Shown here: one piece after another, positions 6,566 through 45,825 of the stretch
Numbering within the stretch: the stretch's first letter is position 1
How the letters are laid out: every line of letters starts with the position of its first letter
Source of the DNA: Neoconidiobolus thromboides FSU 785
Lineage: Eukaryota; Fungi; Entomophthoromycota
Assembly (NCBI GenBank): GCA_025603075.1
Contig: MU626357.1
Location: forward strand, 15,905 to 79,904
DNA length: 64,000 nt
Direction: 5' to 3'
The notes under the pieces: model-generated
Database searches by the model: none
What the model was told of the DNA's origin: nothing
What the model saw: the letters and a program-made list of their open reading frames with translations, nothing else
Translations under genes and position numbers: made by a program

Positions 6566-7412
6566 AAATATTTTATAATTTTTAAATCATAATAGTTTAA
6601 AATTTCACTTGTAAACATTATGTTTTCTAACCTTGATTTATTTGTCTTATAAAACATATTCTAAAACAATTATATACTTTACTACTTTAGATTATCATAG
6701 TTTTTTAAAGTTGATTGTTATATTAATAGCTCATAATAAATCCAAATTCAAGCTACACCTATTAAGTTATGTTTAATATTTCGGCATTTTTAACTTTAAA
6801 AGTTAAATAGTGGCAGGGTAGGATATTATATCATTTTGTTTGAGCAAAGTAAGTATAATTCATATTTAATTTATCCTTAAGATAATAACAAATAACATTG
6901 AGCTTTATTGTGATTGAGTCTGTCATATTGAATCCTTTTCATGCCCCTTAAAGCTTGAAATTTATTAAATATGTTAAATCATGTTAACTCAAAATGTTGA
7001 ATTATCAATGAAAAGGAAGAAAATTGACAAGTATTAGATTTGTTAAATTAATCATTTAACTAAATATTATTTATAATCTAATTTAGTTAAAACTAAAAAT
7101 CACTATAAAATAATCTATAAGAAATCAATTGAAGGAGTAAAAGGGATAAATGAATGTAAATTAAATAAATAAAAGTTTATTATTATAAACATAGTTAGCT
7201 CCTAAAATTAATGATTGGGTGCTTTGAATATAACCAAAAAATGTTAAGAAAATTAAACCAATATTTAAAAACCCGGTTTAAACTACCCCCTCACCCCATA
7301 ATTACTAACCTTATTTAGCAGCTTTAAATTTAAAAGGAGACAGTAAAGCAATAATATTAAAATGATATTGATCATAAAAATACATTCGTTTTTTTCAATT
7401 CTATTTATCACC

Positions 7413-8918
7413 ATGGCTTTAGATAATATAAATGATAATATAGTGATCACTATCATGTTCTTTTGGAACTTATTTATAGTAGGTTCGTCAGTATTATTTG
7501 TACATTTACGAAGCAATTTGACCATAAAATTTCGAAATGTTGGACTAACATTATATGGGGTTGTAGCTACATTACTCCTTACAAATATTTACTTTATGAC
7601 AATGCTAAGGCCTTCTACTGTGCCTTGTCATTTCGTTTTATGGGCTATTTCTTTATGCGCTCCTTCTTGGTTCTTATCTCTTTTTGGAAAGTTTTTTTTA
7701 TTAGCCTTTAGTTACCAGCATGCAAAATCAAAATTAAAGGCAAATACAGCTCTAACCTTTTTGGATAGCAACCATGCCAGCAGTATAAACCACGACAACA
7801 ATAAAAAGAATAGCAACCTTTTCAATTTATTTAGAAAAGATAAGCATGAATCATCCAGAGATGCCGAATTGGGTCGTAATTGGTATCATCAGAATAGAAA
7901 TCGGTGGACAACTCAGTCAGTATGTGTATGTATTATTATTATGCTTGGTTTTCATGCCGTGGTAGCTGCATTGACTCAATGGCTAGACCCAAAGTATCAT
8001 GTATTAGCAACACCACAATTAAATTGCATTCAAGGTAATGGTATGATTCCATTATTTATTACTGCTATCTTATATTTCGGTGTTGGAGGTCCACTCTTAG
8101 TTATTCTACTATGGCCAGCTAAAGATGCTTACTGGCTTAAGTTTGAGTTAGTAGCTTTAGTATTGACTACTTCTCCAATCATTACTTTATTTTTACTATT
8201 CACTTACGTTGGATTTCTTGGAGAAAAATTTTATCCAGTTATATTTTTACTACCATTTCATTTATTGACTCATTGCTCATCTATAGTAATTCCTATATTA
8301 GATGTGTATCGTAATCATTTAAAGAAAACACCTAATAACTTTGCTAAATTTCATCTTATGTTGAAAGATCCAGATCAATTTACTGATTTTAAAGAATTCA
8401 CTGTCAGTGATTTTACAATTGAAAACCCCTTATTTTATGAAGCATATATTAATTTTTTAAATGAGTATGATCCTAATTTATTATTAAACAATCCACTACA
8501 CCAAATTGATTCAAATCTCACAAAGAAATCAATTTTACCTAAGCTAATACCAAACAAATGGAATCCATTACAAAGTACAGCTCATTTAAATGAGTCCCAC
8601 AGTGTAAATAACAATAATATTTTAATGGAAGAGATTTCACGTGATGCCGAAAGCACTGTAATAATCGTTGATAAGAACCTAGCTTTAGCACCTTTAAATG
8701 CAAAAGAGACAAGGGAGCTATTGAATATCTATGAAAAATTTATTGCCCCTGGCTCTGATTATCAGTTGAATTTAAATGGAACAACTGTAAGACAAATAAA
8801 GATGAGAATTAATAATCAAGAGTATGATCCATTGATGTACATGCCAGCTTTGAATGAAGTGCTCGATTCAATGTATCGTAATACCTACGTTCGTTTTATA
8901 AAATTTCAGCAATTTTAA
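7413..8918 (+). CDS. 7TM-RGS protein (GprK/AtRGS1-type architecture), paralog A, intronless
   Basis: Seven hydrophobic segments followed by an RGS domain (FKEFTVSDFTIENPLFY...IYEKFIAPGSDYQLNL...MYRNTYVRF). Start placed at 7413 by homology with paralog B. Confidence 0.9.
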   Translation: MALDNINDNIVITIMFFWNLFIVGSSVLFVHLRSNLTIKFRNVGLTLYGVVATLLLTNIYFMTMLRPSTVPCHFVLWAISLCAPSWFLSLFGKFFLLAFSYQHAKSKLKANTALTFLDSNHASSINHDNNKKNSNLFNLFRKDKHESSRDAELGRNWYHQNRNRWTTQSVCVCIIIMLGFHAVVAALTQWLDPKYHVLATPQLNCIQGNGMIPLFITAILYFGVGGPLLVILLWPAKDAYWLKFELVALVLTTSPIITLFLLFTYVGFLGEKFYPVIFLLPFHLLTHCSSIVIPILDVYRNHLKKTPNNFAKFHLMLKDPDQFTDFKEFTVSDFTIENPLFYEAYINFLNEYDPNLLLNNPLHQIDSNLTKKSILPKLIPNKWNPLQSTAHLNESHSVNNNNILMEEISRDAESTVIIVDKNLALAPLNAKETRELLNIYEKFIAPGSDYQLNLNGTTVRQIKMRINNQEYDPLMYMPALNEVLDSMYRNTYVRFIKFQQF

Positions 8919-9979
8919 CTGCTTCATGTCTATATTTTTTATAAGGTTGATTTATCCTTATTTCATATTTTTAATTCAATAAACTTAGATTTAAATAGTA
9001 ATGAAATTTATTTAAGTGTTAATTTTAAATTATACCTGTACCTTATAATTGATAATTGTTTTTTTTATTGAATATTAAAAACTATATTTCAGCTTTTATA
9101 GCTAACAAAACTAAGTATGAAAATTTATAAATATTTTTGAACATGGAGTAATAAAGCTTTTAAGCGTATTATTAGGAGTAGAAATTTTTAAACGCAAGTT
9201 TAATAAGAATGGGAAAAGACGAGAAGAGTAAATGAAGTTATGATAATGATGTAAAGTATCATAATTTCTTTTTTCAAGTTCAGGTTTTAGAAGGTTATAA
9301 TTAAAACCGAGTAAAAATATTAAATGTTGAAGCAAAAATCACCGTTCCTTCTGTACAAAATAGAATTTCAAATATTAAGTTAAAAATGAAAAATAATAAA
9401 GAAAGATATTCCCAAATATTATTTCAAAAAGAAATCAATGTTTAACATATTGAATCTGAGTATTCTTAGATACAAATCATTTCAAAAATAAACAAGTTAT
9501 GAAAACTGAAAATCAACTTTTTCATCTGGAATCATATAAAGAACAATATTGCTGAAAAAATGTCTAAAAAATATCATTTAAGGATAGTGTATTAGTTTTG
9601 AATAAATAAAAGCTATAACTTCTTTTAAATGTATAATTATTTAAAGTTTGCTTTATAATTTGTTTATTAGCTTTTTCTTTTATTTAATAGGGCTCAGACT
9701 GAATAAAATTATGAAGTATATACAATCATTGGGTAATTGTTACAACATACGAATAAAAGCAACCCATAGTTCGAGTTTATTTTTATTTATAACTTTAGAT
9801 AAAACATACTCCCAAATTAGGTAATATGGCAATTGAAGATTATTTAAAACTCAGGGTTTCCAAGAATAATTTGTACAATAATTTACAAAACGATTAAGTG
9901 GTGGATAAAAGAAAAATAATCGAATTTTTATCTTTTTTACTTTTTATTTTACCTTAATCTATTTTAAAAAAAACCTAAA

Positions 9980-40292: not shown

Positions 40293-41078
40293 GTTGAAGT
40301 TTTTTTTAATAAACTTAAGTTTCATTTTCTTGAATATAAATTATTATTATTATTACAACCTAATTTAAAATTAAAATTATTCACAGCTAGGGGAGCTGGC
40401 AATTTCAACTGCATATAATGACTTAATTATAGCCAGAAAGTGGCAGTGCTTTAATTATTGAAATGAAATAAAATCGTAAGGATATCCTTTATATTAAATT
40501 GTTCAAAAAGAAAGCTACTTTATAAGTTAAAATTTAATAATAAATTACTTGGCTGAATAATGTAAATCAACTCTTGGATTTAAAATTCGGTCATTATTAA
40601 TTTTAAATTTTAAATGAAAATAATATATATATTTTATTAAGCATTTCAAATTATATAATACTTTTAGATGTTTTAGGACCCTCTGATTTCTATTATTCTT
40701 CTATTCTATCTACTACAATAAAATGAACAATAAGCAATTGACCAGTTATGAAATCACATTGAATTAAAGATAGGAAGTTTTGTGTCAAAATGATATTAAG
40801 GTGATTCAATGAGTTGATTTTTATCTATTTTATAAAAGGCATTAAAATTTACTAAAAAATTAACTGAAAAATTAGGCGAATTTGTTTGATGAAGGCGAAA
40901 TTAAGTCATAATTAACAAAAATCATTAGCTAGCTATGTTTTAAACTGCATTAAATCAAATTTTCCTCGATGGAAAAATGGGGGGTATATAAGCTCAACAT
41001 AAGTATTAGTTTTATTTTTTATACATTCACTTAATTTAATATTTTAATTCCAACTATCACTATTAGGTTACTATAAAA

Positions 41079-41963
41079 ATGATGAAGTTACCTTTCACCC
41101 GAATCATCAACTTACTATGCTTCATTCTGATCATTATTGTTAATGCTTTAGGTTTCTTTTTACCTTTAGGTAATCGTTACTTTTATGATCAAATCGACTC
41201 AGCTTTAGCCCCTCATTACTGGTCCATCGTTATTTGGGCTTTAATTTATTTTACCATGTTTCTTTTTATCGTATATCAATTGACTCCATTTACCTATATT
41301 TATGACTATATTAACTATGGGATCTCTCCATTATTTTGGGTTCAAACTTTAGCTAATGTAGGTTGGGTATTTTCTTATGCTTATGCCCCACCAGAACTAG
41401 CTTGGATTCAATTGATCTTTATTTATTTATTATTCTTATCTCTTGCCCTTATGTATAGTTCAGTTACTAAGTATATCAAGAGAGATTTAGCAACCAGAGA
41501 AAACTCGGACCATCATTACTTTTTCAATTTCTTTTTTGGTAGATTCTGGCTTTCGGTCTATTTCGGTTGGGTTTCAGTATCAGTAATTTATTACTCTTTT
41601 GCTATTCTTGCAGATCTTAGTGAATATTCATACCGTAATGCTTCTATTGTTTTTGGCGCTCTAGGTTTGATGGCTCTTATCTTATTAGCTCTTAACCGTG
41701 ATGTAGTATATGGTTTAACTGTCGTATGGGCAGCTATTTGGATTGCTTTGAATTATAGTTATACTAACCAAGATAACGGAAGCCCACAATGGCCCGTATT
41801 CCTTAGTGCTTTAATTGTTGGTGCTATTATACTATTAGCCTGTATCATTACATTTATTATCAATTTGTTCTTTTCTTTGGGACGCTCTGTACATAGAAGA
41901 AAACATTATGCTGATTCAGCTACTACAGGTTTACGTGAACCAGTTCCAGTCCATGTAGCATAA
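41079..41963 (+). CDS. Multi-pass TspO/tryptophan-rich-sensor-like membrane protein
   Basis: About 8 TM segments; pattern LAPHYWSIVIWALIY...LANVGW...LSVYFGWVSV...DVVYGLTVVWA resembles TspO-related families. Family recalled from memory. Confidence 0.65.
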   Translation: MMKLPFTRIINLLCFILIIIVNALGFFLPLGNRYFYDQIDSALAPHYWSIVIWALIYFTMFLFIVYQLTPFTYIYDYINYGISPLFWVQTLANVGWVFSYAYAPPELAWIQLIFIYLLFLSLALMYSSVTKYIKRDLATRENSDHHYFFNFFFGRFWLSVYFGWVSVSVIYYSFAILADLSEYSYRNASIVFGALGLMALILLALNRDVVYGLTVVWAAIWIALNYSYTNQDNGSPQWPVFLSALIVGAIILLACIITFIINLFFSLGRSVHRRKHYADSATTGLREPVPVHVA

Positions 41964-42128
41964 AGTCAAGAAGACAAATTAACCATTACTTGTATAATAA
42001 TATAGCTCATTAAAAATTTAATAAATATATTTTAAATATAATTTTGTTTAATAATAGCAATAGTTTAATATATATACTAATAATGACACGAATTAAAAAG
42101 CAGCTTTATTAAAATTAATGAGTTTTAT

Positions 42129-44009
42129 TTACTCAAGAATAACTGAAGGAATAAATAATTTGGCAGAGAAAGTAAAAACAGAACCTCTTCCTTTACAAGA
42201 GCGTATGGCCATATTACCATGGAATAACTTGATATAATAACTTAACATCCAGAAGCCTAAGCCTAATTCAATGTTGTTTGATAAGTCGGTAACTAATTTA
42301 TCATCATTATCGCTTAATGTTCTAGTATCACAATCGATTTGATTAATAGCACGTATAATCTTAGATACTTGATCATTACGCATACCAATACCAAAGTCAA
42401 CCACATGGAAATAAAATACTTTTCTAGAATAAGTTTTCGGCAATGTAGGATCAGTTTCAATAGGATAAACCAAGTTCTCCACATTAGAGATAAAAGAAGG
42501 ATTGTATTGACTATCAAAAGTACAACATCTTGGATCTTTTAAGAAAGGAATGAATGCTGCTGGTGGATCTTCATTTAGGGAGATAAAAATCGAGACATCT
42601 TGATCTCTAGTACTGTATTTGATAGAGTTATTGAGTAATATAGACATGGCCTGTTTTAACCTTAGTTGGTCACCTATGATAAATTGTGGAGTATCAGGTA
42701 ATACATTGAGATGAAGTTGAATGTTTTTTGTTTTTGCATAATTAGATTGCTGTTCAAATACACCAGTTACTAGTTGATTTATGTTTAGTGTCTGGTTAAT
42801 AAGGGTTAATTGATTAGATTCAATCTTAACAGATTCATCTAAGTTTAATAAGATACCATCTAATTGATTAAAGTAATTATTTATATAATTGAATTGTATT
42901 GTTTGTTCTTCATTTAAGTTATTATGTTGGGCTATAGCTTGTAAACACTGCTTAATATACTTAAGTGGATCATTTAGTTCTTTATTTAAATGCGTAATCA
43001 ATTTCGACTTAAATTGATTATTAATATCGGCATCCTGTTTTAATTGATACAAGTTATGATTATTACGCATTTGATTTTGAATCTTCTTTAAATGATATGA
43101 TTCCAATTGAATTTGTCTTGCTTGTTGTAAAGCAATTTCTAATTGTACTAACACATCCTCAAACATCTCAAGATCTTCTTCATTCAAAATGATACTCTCT
43201 TGCTCATAAAACCCCAAGATAAAACCTTTACCACCATTTTCACTCATTTCAAAGGACATGGCTAAGCCACTCTTAAATAAAGCACCTCTTTGTTTATTGA
43301 CTAATTCTACCATATCATTACAATTCAAATGTAAAGTACAAGTAGTACAAATAATCTTTTTGACAATATCATTGTTTGGGTCCATGTTAATAGTTTTCCA
43401 ATAATGAGCTTTGATACCGGAATTTTCTTTGACCTGATTATGAGTCTGGATATACTCAGAATAACAAATGAGATCACCATTGACCTCATCAGGTAAAAAA
43501 ATTGCTAAGCCACTGAAATTCAAATTGACACTTAACTCATGGACTACTACGTCACAAATCACCTCCACGTCCAATTTTTTACGGATTTGATTGGTGATTT
43601 TACGGAACTTTCTTAACACGTCATTAGCAACTTGTAAACTTTGTTCATGTTTTATACGGAAGCCTAATTCTTCTTGAAGCAATGCAGTTTTTACAGGTAA
43701 TGAAAATACTTTTGGGATAACAAAGATAAGAACACAGGCGGTAGCAAAAGACACAATAGCACACAAAACTTTAGAAGCTAATAAAACTGGGTCCGTTCGG
43801 GTCCATGGTACCCATATAGCTACTAAATGAGTAATACCACAAGCAGTAATAAAAACTTCAAAAAATACTAAAACATATTTAAAAGGCAAAGGACGTGTCA
43901 ATGAACGTTGAAAAAACCATATTTCAATTGGAATAGCAAAATAAGATAAACAAATGATAATGTCGGATACTACAGTACCTATAACTATTGGGTCAGAAAG
44001 ATCCAACAT
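42129..44009 (-). CDS. Ethylene-receptor-like sensor: ethylene-binding TM domain, GAF and degenerate histidine-kinase domain, no receiver; intronless
   Basis: SDIIICLSYFAIP (ETR1 SDFFIAIAYFSIP) and FITACGITHL (ETR1 FIVLCGATHL); GAF start ITNQIRKKLD; N-box GDQLRLKQ...NNSIKYS; G1 DFGIG; H-box reads NKELNDPL. Confidence 0.92.
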   Translation of the reverse strand: MLDLSDPIVIGTVVSDIIICLSYFAIPIEIWFFQRSLTRPLPFKYVLVFFEVFITACGITHLVAIWVPWTRTDPVLLASKVLCAIVSFATACVLIFVIPKVFSLPVKTALLQEELGFRIKHEQSLQVANDVLRKFRKITNQIRKKLDVEVICDVVVHELSVNLNFSGLAIFLPDEVNGDLICYSEYIQTHNQVKENSGIKAHYWKTINMDPNNDIVKKIICTTCTLHLNCNDMVELVNKQRGALFKSGLAMSFEMSENGGKGFILGFYEQESIILNEEDLEMFEDVLVQLEIALQQARQIQLESYHLKKIQNQMRNNHNLYQLKQDADINNQFKSKLITHLNKELNDPLKYIKQCLQAIAQHNNLNEEQTIQFNYINNYFNQLDGILLNLDESVKIESNQLTLINQTLNINQLVTGVFEQQSNYAKTKNIQLHLNVLPDTPQFIIGDQLRLKQAMSILLNNSIKYSTRDQDVSIFISLNEDPPAAFIPFLKDPRCCTFDSQYNPSFISNVENLVYPIETDPTLPKTYSRKVFYFHVVDFGIGMRNDQVSKIIRAINQIDCDTRTLSDNDDKLVTDLSNNIELGLGFWMLSYYIKLFHGNMAIRSCKGRGSVFTFSAKLFIPSVILE

Positions 44010-45825
44010 ATTGATATATATATATTTTTTTTATAAATTAAGTTTGTTGAAATCATTTGTTTATTATTTAAAGCTTTTTATATGTCTAACTTTAGGTTTA
44101 TTTTGAGTATTTTTTATTTGTATACACCCCTTACTTTTACTCCATGTTTAATAAGGGAACCATGTTTTTAGAATGCAGGAAAAGAGGATATTATTTGTCT
44201 GGATGGCATCAAAATCGAAATTAAAATTAAAACTTGTATAAAATTTAAAAAGAACTTGTTAATTACATCTATTACAAAATTTATATTATTAAATTATAAT
44301 ATAAACAGTATAGAAATAAGTATAATATAATTTTATTTATATTATTTTACTTTGAATCTTCACGTAAAAAGCCCAATTTAATAAAGTAGTATTGGTCTTC
44401 CATTACTCCTTAAACAAAGATTAAAAGAAGTTAACTTTTTTATACATTTTATTTTCAAACATAGTAATTTTACATACTAAAAATCACAGTTACTAATAGA
44501 TTATTAAAATTTGTAACAACAATACTGATCGAACAGTCTAAGTCTAGTATCTATAAATTATATTAATCTTTAGTTAATCGGAGTTGTAATACATTGAGCT
44601 TATTAACTTGAATTCTATATTTTTTTAAAACATTTTATATAAAATGTAAGTTTAGTTAAAAAGATAAGTAAGATAGATTAATAACAAATTTAATAAACAA
44701 GTTATGTTGTGTTGATTGAGATACTATTGTTTTTAATAAATAGAAGGGAAATTAAAGAAGATCTAGATATTTATAAGATTTAATTAGCATTTATTCAAAA
44801 TTGAAGAATTAAAAAATTAATACTAGCATAATAAAGCATAAAAATATAATAAAAATCATTTTTAGTCACCACTTATTTTAATTCAAATATTATTTTTATT
44901 AATGCATGTATCTAACTTTTAAAACAACAATAATATGGTGACTATAAAATTTATGCTAATTAATATAAATACTTTATTAACATATTAATTATGTTTTATA
45001 AGAGATTAATCCCTTGATCCTTAAACTCATTATTATTATTGTATAAAATCAAATAAATTATAACAAATTAAGCTAAGGAAGTACATTCCTTATAAAAAGG
45101 AGAGAATAAGGTAACTTGATAATTACTGTAGTCAATTAAGCTAGTAATATTTCATAAGAAGGGATAAGCAAGATAGGAAATACATCAAGTTTATCAATAG
45201 AGTTAGATGTTTGATATTAATAGATTGTGATTGTGCATATATAGTTAGTATTATAAAACTCAGTTCAAAAATAATTATTTTTTCAATAAAAGAAACTAAC
45301 GAGGTTATCTTTAAAGATTAAGAGTAAAAAGGAAATAAACACTAAGCTTGGTTTGTTTTTAAAGGGTGGGTAGTAATTTAATACGATTAAAAGCTTAGAA
45401 TAGTTTATTTGCGATCCTTTTTTATTTTAAAAAAATGTAAAAATACTAAATTGAATAAAATCAGGAGCAGTCAAAAAAGTCATAGTAATAATAATAAAGT
45501 ATCATGAAGAATAAAAATAATTTAAAGCTGTTTATTATTTAAAAATAGATAATTAATAATACAAATGTACTTCATAATAATAAAATGTAATCAAAAGTAT
45601 ATTAATCTTTTTAGAAATAATATAAAACGTTGCATTTACTCACAAATTCCTTACAGTTGCAATTTTGTCTTAGTGTTCTCATGAAAGCCACCTGTTTAAC
45701 TACTAATCAATTTTTAAATTGAAGTCACTTTCTTCTTACCCATCTTACTTTAACTCATTTCATTTCATTCTAGAATCGGCTGTAGTTAAGATGGCTTTGC
45801 TTTTTTTAAATTTTCTGTCAACGTT

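Follow-up and report, generated by a model that had tools for sequence, protein, structure and literature searches.

Neoconidiobolus thromboides FSU 785 encodes a protein that, judged by its sequence, is homologous to ethylene receptors and has kept the signature of the ligand site intact. Its kinase-shaped module appears to be a pseudokinase as regards phosphorelay, with the acceptor histidine changed to lysine and the receiver absent. We consider it probable that the protein is an ortholog of the fungal ethylene-receptor family, a pseudokinase which binds ethylene and signals by protein contacts and not by phosphotransfer.

The gene and the ethylene-binding domain

The gene is found at positions 42129-44009 of the window, which is the whole 64-kb stretch of DNA that was analysed. 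It lies on the reverse strand, as do all the parts of the protein described below. The ORF listing gives an intronless gene of 626 amino acids with its stop codon at 42129-42131, and the annotation of scaffold MU626357.1 (GCA_025603075.1) likewise treats ORF 42129-44009 as one single-exon gene. The DNA of the window has a G+C content of about 26%, and the frame of 626 codons is uninterrupted.

The stop codon is located five residues past the last strand of the ATPase-like (CA) domain. An AT-rich spacer (41964-42128) follows, as seen from the ORF coordinates and the sequence, and reaches to a convergent ORF on the forward strand (41079-41963); the gap between the two ORFs is exactly 165 bp. The preliminary description of this DNA had the ORF ending right after the ATP-binding domain with 165 bp to its neighbour, and the coordinates agree exactly. 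The spacer is too short for a receiver exon to fit there. A tblastn search of the whole 64-kb window with the receivers of four hybrid ethylene receptors detected no receiver domain (best E 2.6), in agreement with the earlier statement that the protein has none.

A sequencing run from the same organism, for which the label RNA is a guess, contains 1.00 of the sampled words of the receptor ORF and only 0.67 of the words of the region 41000-45000, spacers included. This pattern is that expected of transcripts, the gene is therefore probably transcribed. The full coverage of the ORF in this run, subject to the same guessed label, argues against an intron inside it. We also weighed an in-frame intron within the insert of the CA domain (residues 481-530) and rejected it, because the first part of the insert (DPxC..F) is common to the orthologs and to plant ETR1, and all of the sampled ORF words are also present in the same run.

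Residues 1-105 (43695-44009) form three transmembrane helices that make up the ethylene- and copper-binding domain of the ETR1_N type, as recognised from Pfam, the structural model and conservation. The ETR1_N family (PF25487) matches residues 12-103 with an E-value of 1.2e-23. The helices of this domain span residues 7-36, 44-66 and 73 onward in the model, with pLDDT values above 90. Residues D16, Y23, I26, P27, I54, C57 and H61 align with D25, Y32, I35, P36, I62, C65 and H69 of ETR1, and K80 aligns with ETR1 K91. The ligand-site columns, that of K80 included, are conserved in 77-82 of the 82 aligned ETR1_N proteins. The ETR1 numbering was taken from the alignment row of plant ETR1 (P0140), the N-terminus of which we take to be numbered like that of Arabidopsis ETR1. 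The seven ETR1 residues are reportedly required for binding of ethylene and copper, a result ascribed to Wang et al. in 2006. Three transmembrane helices carrying the ETR1 ligand residues had been claimed from the sequence; the ETR1_N match and the presence of all seven residues uphold this. The protein may thus be expected still to bind ethylene. Its N-terminus (MLDLSDPIV) is without the N-terminal cysteine pair of the plant receptors, and the protein starts six residues ahead of the first of the three helices, without an extra N-terminal hydrophobic segment.

The structure of the protein was modelled with AlphaFold2 from an alignment of 82 ETR1_N proteins (mean pLDDT 87.9). The model consists of the three membrane helices, a long juxtamembrane helix, an alpha/beta domain (residues 148-276), a helical hairpin (residues 277-361 and 367-397) and an alpha/beta sandwich that continues to residue 621. 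In a Foldseek search of models of reviewed UniProt proteins, residues 1-622 superpose on plant ethylene receptors with E-values of about 1e-32. The top matches belong to subfamily I, namely OsERS2 (Q0DKM0, E 4.8e-33, TM 0.72), AtERS1 and AtETR1, and subfamily-II receptors come lower in the ranking with E-values of about 1e-25.

The juxtamembrane helix (residues 106-147; 43569-43694) is conserved to about the same degree as the membrane domain. It is 53-62% identical to the orthologs described below, and many of its columns are invariant even in comparison with Basidiobolus. The next domain (residues 148-276; 43182-43568) was described earlier as a GAF domain. The model shows helices and strands over this region, followed by a long helix from residue 277, and the region falls inside the full-length superposition on plant receptors. 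The description as a GAF-like alpha/beta domain can therefore be kept, although the Pfam scan of the window protein gave no GAF match at E<=1, so that the assignment rests on structure.

The kinase-like module

Residues 277-397 (42819-43181) form a connecting helix and a helical hairpin resembling a DHp domain, in which there is no phospho-acceptor histidine. A Pfam scan of the window protein gave no HisKA match at E<=1. In a phmmer search against solved structures, residues 319-480 align with the kinase cores of GacS, HK853 and RetS and with the catalytic domain of ETR1. These alignments place Lys343 opposite the phosphorylated histidine (ithlnKelndpl against lanmsHEIRTPL). The codon of Lys343 is AAA (42981-42983, read as ttt on the forward strand), confirming the earlier claim of a lysine at the position of the phospho-histidine. 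The H-box column holds histidine in 71 of the 82 aligned relatives. Apart from entomophthoralean and Basidiobolus proteins, the rows with another residue are five streptophyte proteins, two of which bear the source name 'ethylene receptor 2'.

The remainder of the protein (residues 398-626; 42132-42818) is an ATPase-like domain with an insert of the ETR type and a lid of low confidence, as identified by HATPase_c and Foldseek. The Pfam HATPase_c family matches with 29.5 bits against a cut-off of 26.4, the match being split in two pieces. Foldseek comparison with the PDB shows that the C-terminal half resembles the kinase cores of GacS, HK853 and RetS, as well as the catalytic domain of ETR1 (4pl9, TM 0.85 by target).

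The motifs of this domain are preserved unevenly. Asn461 of the N box (42627-42629) and the G1 motif D538-F-G-I-G542 (42384-42398) are kept, so the N and G1 boxes persist as had been stated. The F and G2 boxes had both been called degenerate. This is correct for the F box, in which isoleucine stands in place of both phenylalanines (I/I in place of F/F), but the G2 box (ELGLG) is only mildly changed, it has lost the first glycine and keeps two of the three. The ATP lid is a low-confidence insertion in the model.

With neither an acceptor histidine nor a receiver, the window protein would be unable to run a canonical His-Asp relay itself, and in this respect the earlier proposal of a phosphorelay-independent receptor is supported.

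Orthologs, descent and selection

Three full-length orthologs came out of an exhaustive phmmer search. These are KAJ9061474 of Entomophthora muscae (576 amino acids), a protein of Massospora cicadina (585 amino acids) and KXN68996 of Conidiobolus coronatus (621 amino acids). The window protein is 40% identical to each of the two Entomophthoraceae proteins and stands nearer to them than to that of C. coronatus, with which it shares 34% identity along its full length. The residue at the H-box position is lysine in the window protein and in C. coronatus, and glutamine in Massospora and Entomophthora. All four full-length entomophthoralean proteins end 5-10 residues past the CA domain. In Massospora and C. 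coronatus the gene is one open frame, and no receiver is present in the 2.5-6 kb of flanking sequence examined at these two loci. The preliminary description had raised the question of whether the loss of the histidine and of the receiver recurs in orthologs, and both are found in every full-length ortholog aligned. As far as sequence can tell, the kinase-dead, receiver-less form is a trait of the clade and not a one-off.

The homologs in Basidiobolus are shorter (351-369 amino acids) and comprise the sensor and GAF domain only. The Basidiobolus locus contains two convergent sensor-GAF genes, and no kinase remnant was seen in the locus examined. The next-best phmmer matches after the orthologs and Basidiobolus are from Rozella, Paraphysoderma, Sorochytrium, Allomyces and Catenaria.

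A maximum-likelihood tree was built from 25 rows and 707 columns, using a quick search with SH-aLRT support. The four entomophthoralean proteins group together (support 95), with Basidiobolus as their sister (100), and all of these lie inside a fungal and holozoan clade. The streptophyte clade (99), which includes the subfamily-II rows, is separate from the entomophthoralean proteins. Within the entomophthoralean clade C. coronatus branches first, then the window protein, then Massospora with Entomophthora. This order agrees with the species tree in the accessible part of a recent preprint (bioRxiv 10.1101/2023.12.22.573025), and so fits vertical descent.

Plant subfamily-II receptors carry a fourth N-terminal hydrophobic helix. 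The preliminary description labelled the window protein 'ERS2-like', with ERS2 taken as a subfamily-II receptor. The label holds as an analogy only, since the window protein has three helices and not four and matches subfamily I better (E 1e-32 against 1e-25). As a statement of descent it does not stand: in the tree the window protein groups with the hybrid receptors of fungi, a long way from plant subfamily II. Because the fungal clade is nested among hybrid receptors that bear the histidine, and apart from subfamily II, the losses are independent and the likeness is one of convergence.

The kinase-like module could still be an enzyme, with a CA domain that binds ATP and phosphorylates itself on serine or threonine, or phosphorylates a partner, as has been reported for some plant subfamily-II receptors. 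The window copy retains Asn461, DFGIG and all but one of the three G2 glycines, its CA fold superposes on the catalytic domain of ETR1, and in C. coronatus purifying selection acts on the kinase-like half. However, the G1 motif is kept in the window protein only and is lost in all three orthologs, and the N-box lysine is lost in Massospora and Entomophthora, which argues that catalysis is not the conserved function. The loss of G1 in three orthologs also means that nucleotide binding is not a requirement throughout the clade. The insertion in the ATP lid, of low confidence in the model, is a further point against catalysis. We therefore regard an enzymatic role as unlikely. Only the window copy might retain some Ser/Thr kinase activity or bind nucleotide.

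Alternatively, the protein might not be an ethylene sensor, it might be a copper-handling or cation-channel module, compare rice OsERS1 and OsERS2, or it might sense another small ligand. The channel activity of OsERS1/2 is independent of the ethylene-site residue Cys65 (PMC13261662). Also in favour of this reading, the receptor gene is carried by E. muscae and Massospora, which are obligate pathogens of insects. Against it, Cys4 and Cys6 are needed for the Ca-channel activity of OsERS1/2 (PMC13261662). The pair is absent from the window protein (MLDLSDPIV), and the Ca-channel reading is down-weighted on that ground. The strict conservation of all seven binding residues is explained best by ligand binding. 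We consider a role other than ethylene sensing improbable, somewhat more so than an enzyme.

The entomophthoralean ethylene receptors have so far been taken for products of decay, left over from a past in association with plants. On such a reading the window protein would be a functionless, decaying remnant of a hybrid ethylene receptor, the 'gene erosion' of Hérivaux et al. 2017 as given in the accessible part of that paper (PMC5285503). The histidine, the receiver and several ATP-binding motifs are indeed gone. Identity between genera is 50-70% in the membrane domain, 53-62% in the juxtamembrane helix and 38-43% in the GAF domain, and it falls to just 20-30% in the DHp and CA domains, a half of the protein that is wholly lost in Basidiobolus. 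On the other hand, the frame of 626 codons persists at about 26% G+C, the gene is full-length across four genera with intact intronless orthologs, the model is confident throughout and the word coverage is transcript-like.

Selection gives further evidence against decay. A scan of metagenome contigs found no close relatives of the window gene for a direct estimate of dN/dS, and the cluster of the window protein at 90% identity has a single member. The ratio was therefore taken from the C. coronatus ortholog, which is 34% identical to the window protein. Two C. coronatus lineages were compared, one represented by the genome of NRRL 28638 and the other by a metagenome contig and a Logan contig that are identical; the flanking DNA of the two lineages is only 85-91% identical. 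Between the two lineages dS is 0.28 and dN 0.011, which gives an omega of 0.04. By region, omega is 0.07-0.09 in the membrane domain, 0.02 in the GAF domain, 0.018 in the DHp-like domain and 0.027 in the CA-like domain. In the C. coronatus ortholog at least, constraint on the kinase-like half is thus no looser than elsewhere in the protein. A dN/dS near 1 had been named earlier as a sign of decay, and the value of 0.04 is far from it. Since this low ratio includes the dead kinase part (0.02-0.03 in the kinase-like half), it argues against erosion, and we consider that reading largely refuted and very improbable.

Judging by the gradient of identity and by the sensor-GAF proteins of Basidiobolus, the function that cannot be dispensed with lies in the sensor-GAF half. 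If nothing but the sensor-GAF half mattered, there would be no explanation for the very low omega of the kinase-like half, so the kinase-like half must have a constrained role of its own. We read it as a structural or interaction module that has been kept, the details of which drift between lineages.

It is scarcely credible that His340 (THLNK), which lies at i-3 of Lys343, one helical turn earlier on the same helix of a copy with its N and G1 motifs, takes the phosphate instead and passes it to a separate receiver or HPt protein, since the three orthologs have T, S and T in its column and the other tabulated relatives never histidine, no histidine column within residues 295-420 is common to all four orthologs and HisKA goes undetected by Pfam at E<=1; His340 was accordingly ruled out as an alternative acceptor on grounds of conservation.

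Signalling and known receptors

For an ethylene receptor that signals by protein contacts, we propose the following mechanism. The three-helix domain would bind ethylene and copper and sense the ligand in the membrane. The signal would be passed on through protein contacts without phosphotransfer, and the kinase-like module would act in dimerisation or as a scaffold. Most likely the GAF domain, the DHp-like dimerisation surface or both would bind and modulate a true hybrid histidine kinase present in the same cell. Nucleotide binding may persist in the kinase-like module of this species, where the N and G1 boxes are kept.

The best mechanistic model for the window protein is rice OsERS2, a receptor that binds and inhibits the histidine kinase MHZ1/OsHK1 through its GAF domain (PMC6981129). 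An output of this kind, mediated by the GAF domain, has already been proposed for Ancylistes proteins in the accessible part of the preprint cited above (bioRxiv 10.1101/2023.12.22.573025). Entomophthoromycotina are also reported there to have hybrid kinases of Group III and of a lineage-specific PAS type. By analogy, the entomophthoralean receptors might be conserved pseudo-histidine-kinase ethylene sensors that clamp a Group III or PAS hybrid kinase through their GAF and DHp domains, an independently evolved counterpart of the OsERS2-MHZ1 pair. We put this more specific scheme forward as a tentative possibility and would not expect it to hold in full.

Truncated ethylene receptors of Conidiobolus and Basidiobolus are described in the accessible part of Hérivaux et al. 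2017 (PMC5285503). According to the available text of the preprint (10.1101/2023.12.22.573025), the receptors of Entomophthoromycotina keep the ligand residues and one GAF domain, are without a receiver and have incomplete kinase regions. The novelty implied in the preliminary description is therefore not borne out, the truncated receptors being in the former source and the architecture and GAF-mediated output in the latter. The finding is real but already known in kind, and it is no new kind of system. CcHHK3 (KXN68996.1) and Basidiobolus Bm|388937| belong to the same family and have the same architecture of ETR1_N with the ligand residues intact, one GAF domain, an incomplete kinase and no receiver. 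The tree is consistent with orthology to these proteins; the window protein is from another species and alone among the four entomophthoralean proteins keeps the G1 motif DxGxG.

What is new here is, first, the replacement of the histidine (by K or Q) throughout the clade, of which we found no mention in the accessible text of Hérivaux et al. 2017 (PMC5285503). The evidence of purifying selection, which speaks against erosion, is also new, as we found no selection analysis in the available parts of PMC5285503 or 10.1101/2023.12.22.573025. A third point is the retention of the gene in the obligate insect pathogens E. muscae and Massospora. Loss is expected in strict insect parasites in the accessible part of Hérivaux et al. 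2017 (PMC5285503), and E. muscae is said not to carry the receptor gene in that of the preprint (10.1101/2023.12.22.573025). To these is added the G1 ATP motif, kept by this species alone among the four. Sharing across the order, retention in insect pathogens and purifying selection point against the decay reading.

The subfamily-I receptors AtERS1, OsERS1 and OsERS2 are the best full-length structural matches of the window protein, with which they share three transmembrane helices, the GAF, DHp and CA domains and the lack of a receiver. They differ in the N-terminal cysteine pair, which is absent from the window protein, and form a separate lineage in the tree. Plant subfamily-I proteins keep the H-box histidine and signal mainly through CTR1 and EIN2. 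Neither CTR1 nor EIN2 is known from fungi. We found no demonstrated function for the ethylene-receptor homologs of early-diverging fungi in the accessible parts of the literature. The gene offers a compact, intronless test case for an ethylene-binding domain that would signal without phosphorelay and without CTR1 or EIN2.

The subfamily-II receptors AtERS2, ETR2 and EIN4 resemble the window protein in having a degenerate kinase module and in signalling without a His-Asp relay, and ERS2 also has no receiver. The histidine is replaced in many members (by R, D, Q or C in the plant alignment rows). The window protein differs from them in that the losses are independent, the fourth N-terminal hydrophobic segment is missing and the structural match is weaker (E about 1e-25).

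The kinase core of RetS from Pseudomonas aeruginosa is among the top matches to solved structures (TM about 0.7 by target). RetS acts through heteromers with the true kinase GacS and not through a phosphorelay of its own, an output of the kind proposed for the window protein. RetS is bacterial and has an unrelated sensor domain, and the likeness of fold is generic to histidine kinases and is no evidence of a shared mechanism.

The closest sequences outside the entomophthoralean proteins are the hybrid homologs of Rozella (RaHHK2), Paraphysoderma, Allomyces and Catenaria, with E-values of 1e-41 to 1e-51, which have the same sensor and GAF domains. Unlike the window protein, those of Rozella and Paraphysoderma, the ones scanned and aligned, contain a HisKA domain with its histidine, all of the ATP-binding motifs and a receiver at the C-terminus.

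Receptor orthologs in obligate insect pathogens

Two obligate insect pathogens, Entomophthora muscae and Massospora cicadina, have intact full-length orthologs of the window receptor. In E. muscae these are KAJ9061474.1 and KAJ9082166.1, and in M. cicadina the ortholog lies at positions 6596-8347 of its locus (L002), where the NCBI name, 'mitochondrial 2-enoyl thioester reductase', is wrong. Loss of the receptor in strict insect parasites was expected by Hérivaux et al. 2017 (PMC5285503), and E. muscae is said to have no such ortholog in a 2023 preprint (bioRxiv 10.1101/2023.12.22.573025).

Juxtamembrane helix and putative stand-alone sensors

The juxtamembrane helix of the receptor (residues 106-147; window 43569-43694, minus strand) is conserved about as well as the ligand-binding helices, many of its residues being invariant from the window fungus to Basidiobolus (EELG..HE.SL..AND.L.KFRK.T..R..LD). 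This helix may be a signal-transmitting or partner-binding element.

Basidiobolus meristosporus contains two paralogous sensor-plus-GAF genes on MCFE01000683.1 (locus L003, 6001-7056, plus strand, 351 aa; 7782-8931, minus strand, 363 aa), these are convergent with 726 bp between them, and no kinase remnant was found near either gene. A third paralog (P0123) is on a separate scaffold. The paralogs appear to form a small family, its members being stand-alone proteins of the ethylene-binding/GAF type.

Convergent neighbour and RNA-seq runs

The convergent neighbour of the receptor gene (window 41079-41963, plus strand) encodes a multi-pass membrane protein of 294 aa, for which a Pfam scan gave no family with an E-value better than 0.015 and no TspO family at E<=1.

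Two RNA-seq runs labelled 'fish gut metagenome' (X6 and X11) contain 6-14% of the sequence words from window 41000-45000, which suggests that the window fungus or a close relative was present in those samples.
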